A stretch of 63,865 nucleotides of DNA, taken from the NCBI RefSeq assembly GCF_002113885.1, contig NW_018408919.1, forward strand, positions 2,400,278-2,464,142, given 5' to 3'. The DNA comes from Mizuhopecten yessoensis. Its lineage: Eukaryota. Positions 3,489 through 6,705 of the stretch are shown here, in pieces. Both the position numbers and the translations under genes were made by a program. A model generated the notes under the pieces. That model saw only the letters and a list, made by a program, of their open reading frames with translations. It did no database searches and was not told the DNA's origin. The stretch's first letter is position 1; each line of letters opens with the position of its first letter.

Positions 3489-5061
3489 AGAAAAAAAGTT
3501 ATAACGAGATTTTAGTGCTAAAATGCATGAATGCTACATGTACACTGTATACCGTCAACACGGCGTATGTAGACCACACATTGGAAAAGTGCTGTAAGTG
3601 TAATAATCACCCCTGTATGTGAATGTTGTTATTTCACCAACATTAATTTTACTTTGATGAGTTTCTAATAATCTAATAATTATAAGGTTTACATATAATA
3701 GTTGTTTTGCTACTAATACTCCTGAGCCAATTCTAGGGTATATATTGATCATTATATCCTACAGCTTAACAATGTTTAAGTATTATTACTAATGACTATA
3801 AATGTTTAAAATGCCCTTTTTTTAATAAAAGGCGTATTTGTCATCTAATGATCACGAAGAGGGAGTCTGTATTAATTGTTTCCTTCTTAAGGAATTAAAA
3901 CTATCTGTCTATTAAACCACTTTTTTATAGAGTTGTTTGTAGGAAATGTCAAATTATATTTTATCAGATTGGATAATAAAATATATTTTAAGTAAATCAG
4001 TTGTTTACCCATTCACAGTTGTGTCTAAATAAGGATAACAATAATAGTTTCATTTACATAAATGCACACTGCTGTCCAGATTACAATTGAATTCACTTAA
4101 TTTTCTGATTGTATGAAAGTCGAGCAGTAGTTATCGCCCAATGCAATAAGAAATGAGCTCTTAGATAGGGAGTTGTCTACCTTATCACGTAAAAGCAGAT
4201 GTCTAAATAGCAAAACACAACTAATTTGGTAATTGTAGCATTTCTTTAATAAAATACACAATTGGTCACAGAGACTAATATTCTGTAGGGGATAAGTATC
4301 TGGTAAGAGATATGATGTAGTTATTACGAAGAAGACTATCTAAGGACATAGTCAATCTAATGTTTGGCAAAATTTCACATATAAAAATATATGTGGTTAT
4401 TTTACTAACATAAAAGAGGTTTTTAACATTTTCATAAAATAAAAGTCATACGCCTCAGCGTAGACATCGAACTTCCAACTTGACACGAAAGGACGTAAAC
4501 AGAAACCAAACAAAAGGAAAGACGAGAAAGACTGGAGAAAAAACAGGTGATCATTACGTTTATGCGTTTCCTTCACATCTTACACAGACACTGTCTTCGT
4601 CAACATAAATTCTGAACATTTAAAATAAACATAACTATAAATCTGTCGTCTCTACTCTGAACATATTACGTAATAAACGTATTTGGTATATCAGTTAAGC
4701 GATTATAGCTTTCTTCTAGTTTTGTTAAAATGGACTAATTTTCTGTTACACGTAATTTGAACTCCTTCCTTAAACCCTTTATTTCAACTTTAGATCAATA
4801 GCTTCCCGTATTTTATCATAATGTCTAAAGTCATTACGATTAAGAAGTTTATTTTGATGAGAAAAGAATGACGCACATAGTTTACATTGTCATACTGCAA
4901 AGAAAAATGTCGCACGGTAATTGGTCGAATTGCCAAGGTACCTGAAGCTATGTTTGCCGGGGTACATAAGAGCACGCGCGGCTGTTGTAAGGGAGATAAC
5001 TCGAAGAATCGAATCGAACACATCGGAGAACGTTCGTCTGCTAATGTCAACAATGAACAAA

Positions 5062-6363
5062 ATGGCGAAACGGTTTGCAAGCCACACAGAGAGTGAAATT
5101 GAGACAAAACGGGCTACACTTATACCTACAAACACAAAGAAAAGTAACAATTCAGCAAGCAAAACCTTCAGAGCATACTTAAGCGAAAAGGAGCAAGACA
5201 CAGATTTTGAGGACGTCTCGAAGCCAAGATTAGACGAGGCATTGGGTCATTTTTATCTCGATGCAAGGAAACAGGATGGGAGTCTTTACAAGACGACAAC
5301 GCTTGAACATTTTCCTCACGGACTTAACAGGTATCTGAAAGCTCCCCTTGTCTCGAAGAAATTTGATTTGTTAAAAGATCAGGACTTCCACGAATCTAAC
5401 GAGTGCTTTAAAACTGCTGTGTCCGATTTAAAATCAAGTGGGAAAGGAGTAATAAATCACCATAATGTCATCTGTCCCTCAGATAGAGAAAAAATGTACA
5501 CGTCGATACACATGTCGGCCGTAACACCGGCAGGTCTGGCCAATAAAGTGCAGTTTGACATTAGACTATACTTTTGTAGAAGGGGTTGTGAAAACATGGA
5601 AAAAATGACGAAATCAACGTTAAAAGTTAAAACAGACCCAAAAACAAATCTGAAATTTGTGACAAAAGACGTTAATAAGTTAACCAAAATTCACCGTGAC
5701 GACAAGGAACTCTACACCGGACACATGCCAGAAGAACCTGGTTCGCCGTATTGCCCTGTCAAGTCTTTTGAGAAGTACCTGTCTAAATCGAATCCTAAAA
5801 ACGACAGATTGTGGCAATTTCCGTTAGATTCGTATTGTGACGAGGATTATGTGTGGTATGCCAACCGTCCCATTGGAAAAGATACACTCAGCAAATGTAT
5901 GTCCAACATGAGCCAGAAGTGTAAACTCTCTCAACAATATACAAACCATTGTATCCGCGCTACAGCAGCCACCATTCTCACTCAAAGTAACTTTACAGCG
6001 TCACAAATTATGGCAATCACCGGCCATAAATCGGTCTCGCTGTGTACCAACGTGTGTCAGACAATGAAAAAAAAAACTAACATGGGCAGGGCCATTGCGA
6101 GTGGAATCTCTCCGACTGCTGGAAAAGAGAACGTGCCTTCCGTTCTGCCTCCCACTGTAAGACTTGCCCTACCCCCATCACACCAGAAAGTGACGCCAGT
6201 TATTTCCAATACGGTAGCTACACGTCCTGATTTTGGTATTAGCCTTTCCGGTAACAACCAGGAATTGCCGCCAGATCTACAAGGTCTTGAACTGGATCAG
6301 CTGTTTAGTGAAATGTATGACCCGCACACGACGTCCGCACAGAGCGTATCGTTAAGGAACTGA
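5062..6363 (+). pseudogene. Tyrosine recombinase (Crypton/DUF3504, ZMYM/QRICH1/KCTD1-like family), locally frameshifted at the catalytic Tyr
   Basis: Motifs FYLDARKQDGSLYK, FCRRGCENM (catalytic R), CPVKSFEKYLSK, WYANRPIGKDTL, YTNHCIRATAAT (HxxR) and IMAITGHKS. The expected ..AVYQRVS is in another frame (6039-6059). Likely start is aaaATGGCG at 5062. Confidence 0.85.
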
Positions 6364-6562
6364 GTTGTTAAGGAACTGAGTTGTTATTTAATGTTGTTTC
6401 AAAACCATATTGTTGACTTATTATAATTTAAAAATTTATTAAATTGTTGGAATTATACAAAAAATGTTTTTTCTGTTTTCCCGTACTACCGCCCTACACA
6501 GTATCTGTTTTCTTGCAAGCACGAGTCCCAACCTATAAATGGCTTTGCAGTATGACAAATTC

Positions 6563-6705
6563 GTTATACAGGTCTTGGTTCGGCTCAGGGTACATAAGGT
6601 CCTGACAGCGAACATGGGACCATGTACCCTGCCAAGAAGGCGAAGGGTACATAAGGTCCTGACGGCGAACATGAGACCATGTACCCTGCCAAAGACCTGT
6701 ATAAC
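6563..6705. repeat. Terminal fold-back: 14-bp outer inverted repeat enclosing two 49-bp self-hairpin units
   Basis: gttatacaggtctt (6563-6576) / aagacctgtataac (6692-6705). Units 6587-6635 and 6644-6692 differ at 2 nt; each reads agggtacat..ggtcc...ggacc/agacc-atgtaccct. Confidence 0.9.

Follow-up and report, generated by a model that had tools for sequence, protein, structure and literature searches.

A palindromic site split between the two ends of a putative CryptonA-type transposon in the scallop Mizuhopecten yessoensis

Introduction

How Cryptons recognise their ends and how they move has been open since these tyrosine-recombinase (YR) transposons were first described, and their boundaries have been called hard to define. 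Here we take up the question at one locus, a 63,865-nt stretch of contig NW_018408919.1 (positions 2,400,278–2,464,142 of the forward strand, assembly GCF_002113885.1) from the scallop Mizuhopecten yessoensis, hereafter the window, in which positions 4887–6710 hold what, to judge from its sequence, is a decayed CryptonA-type (DUF3504) YR DNA transposon. A preliminary description of this DNA had pointed to a recombinase open reading frame (ORF) between perfect 16-bp inverted repeats (IRs), followed by a terminal double hairpin, and had suggested that the hairpin could be a folded substrate for recombination. What, then, is such a structure doing at the end of a Crypton? Animal Cryptons are described as having no terminal repeats, direct or inverted (PMC3212892), and a later account states that Cryptons lack terminal inverted repeats (TIRs), a description of repeats being missing for some families (PMC13465315, 2026). 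For the active CryptonF-1_cRei, a terminal motif that is like the target is reported, and a gain of copies despite clean excision (PMC9977147). No description of palindromic or hairpin Crypton ends was found in the literature searched, the coverage of which was partial and did not include Repbase.

Results and discussion

The ends of the element

A search of the scallop genome (988 Mb, 82,659 contigs) for copies of the element, here called family 1, returned about five long copies that are 91–95% identical to the window, together with fragments, and at least 40 short derivatives that consist of both ends only (120 first-look candidates); as long palindromes are error-prone in assemblies, these copy counts, and the unit arrangements given below, are uncertain. 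In one type of derivative window positions 4887–5311 are joined directly to 6539–6710, and in another the first ~190 bp are joined to about 6362–6710; the derivatives of 0.5–0.6 kb all keep at least ~186–190 bp of the left end, the right inverted repeat (IR-R) and the palindrome that follows it. Left flanks diverge exactly before TTGTCATAC in 40 copies, and right flanks diverge after ...GTATAACTAATA, or a near variant of it, in 29/29 complete copies. Because the flanks diverge at these points, the fold-back is the right end of an element that runs from 4887 to 6710, and the end formerly placed at 6705 must, on the evidence of copies and empty sites, be moved outwards by 5 bp. Other copies do carry the hairpin, and in those examined it ends the element; every fold-back copy examined was attached to an element with a left end and none was solo, that is, the hairpin is not an independent MITE (a miniature transposable element with inverted repeats).

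The 16-bp repeats of the preliminary description were recovered by a repeat search as a perfect pair, IR-L at 4887–4902 (TTGTCATACTGCAAAG) and IR-R at 6543–6558 (CTTTGCAGTATGACAA), both given, like all features of the element, on the plus strand; by our own arithmetic ~8e-4 such perfect 16-nt pairs would be expected by chance in 2.6 kb. Only IR-L is terminal, at the point where the flanks of 40 copies diverge and which the empty sites (below) confirm, and IR-R lies 152 bp inside the right end, standing before the palindrome in nearly all copies examined. The fold-back begins directly after IR-R. It had been described with a 14-bp stem and 49-bp units; in our search its outer arms are 18 nt long (6559–6576 and 6692–6709, 94% complementary) and the two units that they enclose measure 54 nt (6582–6635 and 6639–6692, 93% alike). 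As single-stranded DNA, positions 6540–6715 fold with −40.3 kcal/mol (z = −6.9), a value equalled by none of 200 shuffles, and a search of Rfam with 4500–7100 gave no match, so that the hairpin is without a known RNA family. The 11-mer GGGTACATAAG, common to both hairpin units, is found again at 4960–4970, just as first noticed, within a subterminal copy of the hairpin-arm motif (4954–4970, TTGCCGGGGTACATAAG) that is a candidate accessory binding site.

One palindromic site in two parts

When the right end of a copy is joined in silico to IR-L, the two form a single hairpin of ~180 nt (−106 kcal/mol in copies whose two units are inverted, R+F). In this fold IR-R, the 5′ half of an outer stem, pairs with IR-L, which in a circle would be its 3′ half; ATTCG (6559–6563) then stands opposite CTAATA (6705–6710) in an irregular region, and a long inner stem follows, its 5′ arm at 6564–6576 (TTATACAGGTCTT) and its 3′ arm, found by inverted-repeat search and folding, at 6692–6704 (AAGACCTGTATAA). 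The ATTCG/CTAATA region leaves one C.T mismatch and one extrahelical A, in family 1 and in a second scallop family (family 2, below) alike. The break that linearises the element falls directly 3′ of the extrahelical A, after 6710; the left terminus thereby receives 16 nt of the outer stem, and the right terminus everything else. The 16-bp repeats, noted before as lying to the left and right of the ORF, are no TIR pair but the two halves of an outer stem, and the repeats and the fold-back are parts of one palindromic site that is split by the crossover.

The terminal double hairpin likewise has to be redrawn: the fold-back is real and terminal, but a single long hairpin is the archetype. Of about 30 complete copies, 16 have an RF interior, five have F and two have FF, other arrangements (RFF, RRF and R among them) being few. 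The usual form is therefore one long palindrome of inverted units, R+F, and the interior of the window copy (6577–6691), with its two units in the same orientation (F+F), is a rare rearranged variant that looks like an R+F+F variant, such as that of copy L008, minus its first unit. We also considered a regular flip/flop reading of the F+F units, and rejected it, as F+F occurs in only two copies.

Target and junction

The genome-wide search of the ends that the preliminary description had proposed not only fixed the termini, it also allowed four empty sites to be rebuilt, from insertions into host tandem repeats: L013 and L029 of family 1, L073 of family 2 and L078 of a third family (family 3, below). 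When the flanks are joined they reproduce intact repeat units, with no mismatch in L013, L078 and L073 and one in L029. With the join shifted by 1–4 nt the match is lost in three of the loci; at L073 one +1 variant matches, with three mismatches vs none. Because the joined flanks restore uninterrupted repeat units, there is no target-site duplication and no target bases are lost: the insertion is conservative, as expected for a site-specific recombinase.

A target logo was drawn from 40 left and 38 right flanks of family 1 (those of families 2 and 3 come from only six and 4–5 copies). On the left it has A at −10 (24/40), a pyrimidine at −9, A at −8 (34/40) and A or T at −7, followed by a spacer without preference from −6 to −1; on the right it has A at +1 (24/38), T at +2 (33/38), a purine at +3 (33/38) and T at +4 (30/38). 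The target is a weak palindrome, A-Y-A-W, six bases, A-T-R-T, with the junction always at the right edge of the spacer. At the window copy the left side of the host target (4877–4886) reads ATAG plus the 6-nt spacer TTTACA, and the right half-site (6711–6714) reads CTAT where the consensus has A-T-R-T. The element itself starts with TTGT, similar to the right flank of the target; the left junction reads TTGT in 39/40 copies and the right flank is variable. When the element's own right and left ends are joined, the result, ATAA CTAATA|TTGT, has the same pattern as the target. One family-2 insertion lies in host sequence, CCTGTATAAC AGAATG^TTGTCATATAC, that closely mimics the family-1 junction CCTGTATAAC TAATA^TTGTCATAC.

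The host repeat at L073 (770–2340) is a satellite of ~34–36 bp, the unit of which contains CCTGTATAACAGAATGTTGTCATATAC, almost a family-1 end-to-end junction; this satellite may be a preferred pseudo-target, or may itself have been born from a Crypton junction.

Recurrence of the design in other families and species

Is this arrangement peculiar to one decayed family? Family 2 is known from gene-less copies of ~640 bp (at least 261 first-look candidates). Its 16-bp IR has another sequence (TTATTACCCCTTTGAG), and a palindrome of ~130–150 nt follows directly after IR-R; it has the ATTCG of family 1, identical, the same ATTCG/CTAATA irregularity, and the same terminus, ...GTGTAACTAATA. Its differences from family 1 in the inner stem are compensated on the opposite arm. 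An alignment of hairpins from family 1 (seven) and family 2 (four) gives 63 stem pairs, of which 25 are changed on both sides and few on one side only, and the stem covariation looked for since the first description is therefore present. At L072:1900–1950 (minus strand) the left end of family 2 holds two tandem AATCTCAGGGGGTATACG, like the motif of its own hairpin arm, a pair that appears to parallel the single arm-like motif at window 4954–4970. One further family-2 locus departs from the rule: at ~1770–1960 of L076 the 3′ arm of the palindrome is without its AACTAATA end and continues as a mirror of IR-R and the sequence upstream of it, to be read as an inverted duplication that passes through the hairpin, or else as an artefact of the assembly.

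Family 3, of 2.4–2.6 kb, has an intact DUF3504 ORF of 597 aa and an IR of 8 bp; its right end carries palindromic units, and its copies are 98–99% alike (L078:2074–4679 in C704; L079–L082). In contigs assembled from DNA runs, the depth over a family-3 copy is ~125–150 in the interior, 11–15 in the flanks and ~1,400–2,900 at the two ends, and from these depths we estimate about ten full copies and a hundred or more derivatives that retain the ends. Derivative joints of the family (2446>4378 and 3048>4513) were found in assembled contigs. Contigs from two RNA libraries cover the ORF, which is not proof of transcription; with its intact ORF and closely similar copies, family 3 may still be active.

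The design is also found beyond the scallop, in relatives of the element from many marine animals. In a metagenome sample of 80 contigs that encode relatives of 27–53% identity, a palindrome of at least 60 nt lies within 1.5 kb downstream of the gene in 20 of the 37 relatives with at least 900 nt of 3′ sequence, and an upstream palindrome occurs in four more contigs; as background, two such palindromes were counted in 58.6 kb. Where a contig is long enough, an inverted partner of the sequence that adjoins the palindrome lies across the ORF (L086, 21 nt; L106, 22–34 nt; L144, 19 nt; L089–93, L124 and L155, 12 nt). L089–L093 represent at least four different insertions with common ends (TTATTATACAAT... 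and ...AATAATTGCTTA); positions −10 to −7 of their left flanks read ATAA in three of the four distinct cases and CTAA in the fourth, and their right flanks begin W-T-A.

Strand polarity of the hairpin

Among the metagenome loci, the 2 × 2 internal loops of the hairpin read TC/TC on the ORF-sense strand in 28 cases and GA/GA in four, the latter mainly in loci where palindrome and ORF stand in the opposite order. Read on the ORF-sense strand, C-TTC-G is the typical apex, and the commonest apex of family 1 (TTCG CC TTC GG CTCA) is of the same type. The antisense strand thus presents tandem G.A mismatches and a C-GAA-G loop, both of them unusually stable DNA motifs, and under a nearest-neighbour model this strand has a slight advantage in folding, seen at 11/16 metagenome loci and in 13/16 family-1 copies. 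As the asymmetry would be meaningless in plain duplex DNA, its conservation suggests the folding of one strand in particular.

In a subgroup of 27–31% identity (L137, L160, L161 and L162) the palindrome is upstream of the ORF, with GA/GA instead of TC/TC; there the ORF is flipped relative to the end architecture, and in L161 a 16-nt IR partner lies downstream of the ORF. A role at the RNA level, for example as a hairpin in a 3′ untranslated region, was rejected, since the hairpin can lie 5′ of the ORF and its polarity is reversed in some relatives; gene-less copies, moreover, keep the hairpin, and polarity tracks the end architecture, not the ORF.

A proposed mechanism and its rivals

What the palindrome does is a matter of weighing. 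We consider that it probably is a split attachment site that is used as folded DNA, in the manner of integron attC or CTX-phage attP. Of the two half-sites to which the recombinase would bind, one would be the outer stem (IR) and the other the inner stem's first turn, the irregular region between them serving as spacer, and the site would act folded, as a hairpin or a cruciform arm, the folded strand being that antisense to the ORF. The antisense strand alone would then be exchanged with a duplex target (a pseudo-site), and replication would resolve the resulting junction and complete the insertion, as in attC × attI recombination and CTX-phage integration. Motifs of the GGGTACAT type, in the arms and near the left end, would serve as accessory binding sites.

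The invariant junction bears on the strand. A YR cuts each strand at the 5′ end of the spacer (a 5′ stagger); where the junction lies at the spacer's right edge it is therefore one made on the antisense strand, with the enzyme on the IR, and this is the same strand that the mismatches indicate. The element's spacer, furthermore, appears at the left junction in 0/40 insertions, where a two-strand exchange across unlike spacers predicts about half. A junction that is invariant despite unlike spacers fits, as indirect evidence, the single-strand exchange that we propose. The suggestion in the preliminary description that the hairpin is a folded recombination substrate has thus come through the tests by which it might have failed (a hairpin missing from other copies, absent covariation or an independent MITE); its folded action we infer by comparison only. 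As a general statement, that animal CryptonA transposons integrate through a folded single strand, by way of a polar hairpin, a one-strand exchange and replicative completion, we offer the idea tentatively and consider it somewhat more doubtful than not.

Several points weigh against a folded site. No transposition intermediate has been seen: Logan contigs assembled from sequencing runs held no end-to-end (circle) joint and no empty allele, only derivative joints. Hairpins of this kind appear to break short-read assemblies, as three copies (L015, L021 and L023) have runs of N that start inside the family-1 palindrome or immediately behind it. The difference in folding energy between the strands is small (~1–4 kcal/mol in the nearest-neighbour model). 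The covariation is essentially one contrast, family 1 against family 2, and copying mechanisms, rather than selection for pairing, could also keep palindromes symmetric. About half of the metagenome relatives are without a palindrome, though many such contigs are short. In duplex form the junction (CTGTATAA, six bases, TTGTCATAC) already looks like a normal YR core, and folding is therefore not strictly needed. Finally, we know of no report of single-stranded YR recombination in eukaryotes.

A serious rival, which we nevertheless hold to be unlikely, is a duplex-only reaction, in which an excised double-stranded circle recombines through the core CTGTATAA-CTAATA-TTGTCATAC and the palindrome is accessory, for example by docking accessory proteins, by helping synapsis as a cruciform, or by giving the circle an origin or terminator. 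A classical YR core, with half-sites ending in A-Y-A-A around a 6-bp spacer, is matched by the circle junction as well as by the target logo; arm-like motifs occur outside the hairpin too (at 4954–4970); and Goodwin's Crypton model, as given in PMC3212892 and PMC9977147, is itself a duplex circle with short target microhomology. Such a reaction would be served by a core of ~30 bp, yet palindromes of 130–180 nt are kept by compensated changes in diverged families. Nor would it give meaning to the strand signature (TC/TC vs GA/GA), to the GAA-type apex or to a polarity that tracks end architecture rather than ORF orientation, and it would leave the junction free to vary where spacers are unlike, which it never does.

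Alternatively the palindrome could be a by-product of transposition, remade in each cycle and not recognised at all, through second-strand synthesis primed by the hairpin or through a switch of template where a single-stranded or linear intermediate ends. The arms are indeed near-perfect in young copies, the two families differ by fully mirrored changes, the number and orientation of units vary (RF, RFF, RRF, F, R), and in L076 the inverted duplication runs through the palindrome. Copying from arm to arm, however, would erase the ATTCG/CTAATA region, the bulged A and the TC/TC blocks, which are conserved across families and species, as is the apex loop, and we regard a by-product as improbable. 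That the hairpin is an unrelated fold-back or MITE beside a transposon with 16-bp TIRs moved by another transposase is what the window taken alone would suggest, with IR-L and IR-R like a classical TIR pair and the hairpin just outside, but it is very improbable given that no examined palindrome is solo, that copies have a common right boundary after the hairpin, that neither candidate boundary has a target-site duplication, and that the same layout recurs with unrelated IR sequences in other families and species.

The design supplies exact ends, a target motif and a defined DNA on which binding and cleavage can be assayed, and with its help Crypton ends and gene-less derivatives can be annotated in the genomes of marine invertebrates. 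Should folding be necessary, a mode of recombination known only from bacteria would extend to animals; folded-strand integration would then be a eukaryotic counterpart of the attC and CTX systems, and would explain the gain of Crypton copies.

The recombinase gene and its decay

The sole long ORF in the 1.8 kb of the element is open from 4921 to 6363 (480 aa), with a likely start at 5044–5062 (MAKRFAS) that gives a putative gene at 5044–6363. It matches DUF3504 (2.8e-09) and Phage_integrase (3.4e-07) in Pfam, and DUF3435 and QRICH1 weakly; GCR1_C is absent from its Pfam matches, as for the CryptonA group, and no reverse transcriptase, RNase H or DDE transposase is encoded, by the ORF list and Pfam, anywhere in the element. 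The assignment to Cryptons, already implied in the preliminary description and borne out by the profile search, holds because DUF3504 and Phage_integrase are both matched, the YR is the only ORF and there is no target-site duplication. A YR retrotransposon of the DIRS/Ngaro kind was rejected, as reverse transcriptase, RNase H and split or inverted long terminal repeats are not present.

The ORF had been reported as that of a YR, and open it is, but it is defective. In the window copy HxxR (NHCIRAT) and GHKS are in frame, and the codon of the catalytic Tyr (6045–6047) lies in another frame because 7 bp are deleted after 6038 and the run 6067–6076 is longer by four A, a lesion (6038–6076) that emerged from alignment with four sister copies. 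The Tyr segment of these sister copies reads ...GHKSVSSLAVYQRVSDNEK..., and the alternative frame of the window reads AVYQRVSDNEKK; the whole segment SSLAVYQRVSDNEK of the sister copies, catalytic Tyr included, is out of frame in the window copy. The motif ...AVYQRVS... is kept in sister copies L002, L004 and L005 and in relatives. The catalytic R-H-R-Y set is thus present in the family, and the window copy is a pseudogene. Compared with its sisters, the window copy is also without 8 bp at 4954 and ~92 bp at 6358, and all long family-1 copies have frameshifts or stops. Where the sister copies hold the ~92 further bases, the window has GTTAAGGAACTGAGTT twice, a perfect 16-bp tandem duplication (6351–6382) that resembles a deletion with a small duplication scar.

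The closest protein relatives (40–53% identical) are from bivalves and gastropods, namely mussels, oysters and periwinkles, the best of them carrying names such as ‘KCTD1_15’ or ‘KIAA1958-like’; fish KCTD1 in its long isoform (36–37%) and a protein of an acorn worm (34%) are more distant. This neighbourhood matches the CryptonA/DUF3504 group as described in PMC3212892. The scallop genome also holds a single-copy DUF3504 homologue of 387 aa (L070:1880–3043; C4225:294379–295542), 51% identical and with ...AVYQK kept, which sits within an annotated 735-aa scallop protein, LOC110455972, and may be a Crypton gene that became domesticated, not a transposon. It was dropped as a source of element ends, which cannot be defined for a single copy. 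A coarse scan of L071 revealed no palindrome.

Comparison with known systems

Among transposons, the scallop element is closest to CryptonA (Goodwin et al., 2003; Kojima and Jurka, 2011, PMC3212892): its sole gene is a YR with DUF3504, it has no reverse transcriptase and makes no target-site duplication, its short terminus resembles the target, non-autonomous derivatives outnumber full copies, and the long isoform of KCTD1 is related. Unlike CryptonA as described (PMC3212892), it has a terminal IR at one end and, at the other, an inverted copy of it plus a polar hairpin of 130–180 nt. A likeness of terminus and target is seen also in CryptonF-1_cRei of Chlamydomonas, the CACCG terminus of which resembles its CAYCG target, and whose rise in copies despite clean excisions would suit a replicative step; it belongs to another Crypton group, however, and in the available part of its description no hairpin or palindrome is mentioned (PMC9977147). 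Its target is a 5-nt microhomology at one terminus, whereas the scallop element combines W-T-R-T with an A-Y-A-W half-site 6 nt away. DIRS1-type YR retrotransposons, which have inverted terminal repeats, share with it an internal segment near the right end that is complementary to the terminus; DIRS elements, though, are several kb long with reverse transcriptase, RNase H and methyltransferase, in place of 1.8 kb with the recombinase only.

The likeness to folded bacterial sites is of another kind. As in CTX-phage attP(+), the forked hairpin on which XerCD acts (PMC3442271), two inverted core-like sites fold with a mismatched centre; there one strand pair only is swapped with a duplex target, the reaction being completed by replication, and the same is proposed for the scallop element. 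CTX differs in having host recombinases and a single-stranded phage genome, whereas Cryptons are without a known source of single strands. The attC site of integrons (PMC2727003, PMC5027507, PMC4792948) is likewise an imperfect palindrome at the 3′ end of a mobile unit, with a crossover that splits the outer stem, the last bases of which begin the integrated unit, with unpaired or extrahelical bases that are conserved close to the crossover or at it, and with a structure that is kept while its sequence varies. In attC one strand is used and resolution is replicative, both of which would apply to the scallop element by analogy, its resemblance to attC being known from the DNA sequence. We do not count the element as a member of these systems; as to IntI or XerCD, Pfam gives only the general Phage_integrase fold and DUF3504. 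Set beside attC, then, the scallop element has a eukaryotic host, a DUF3504/Crypton recombinase instead of IntI, longer hairpins, and a loose genomic target where integrons have attI.

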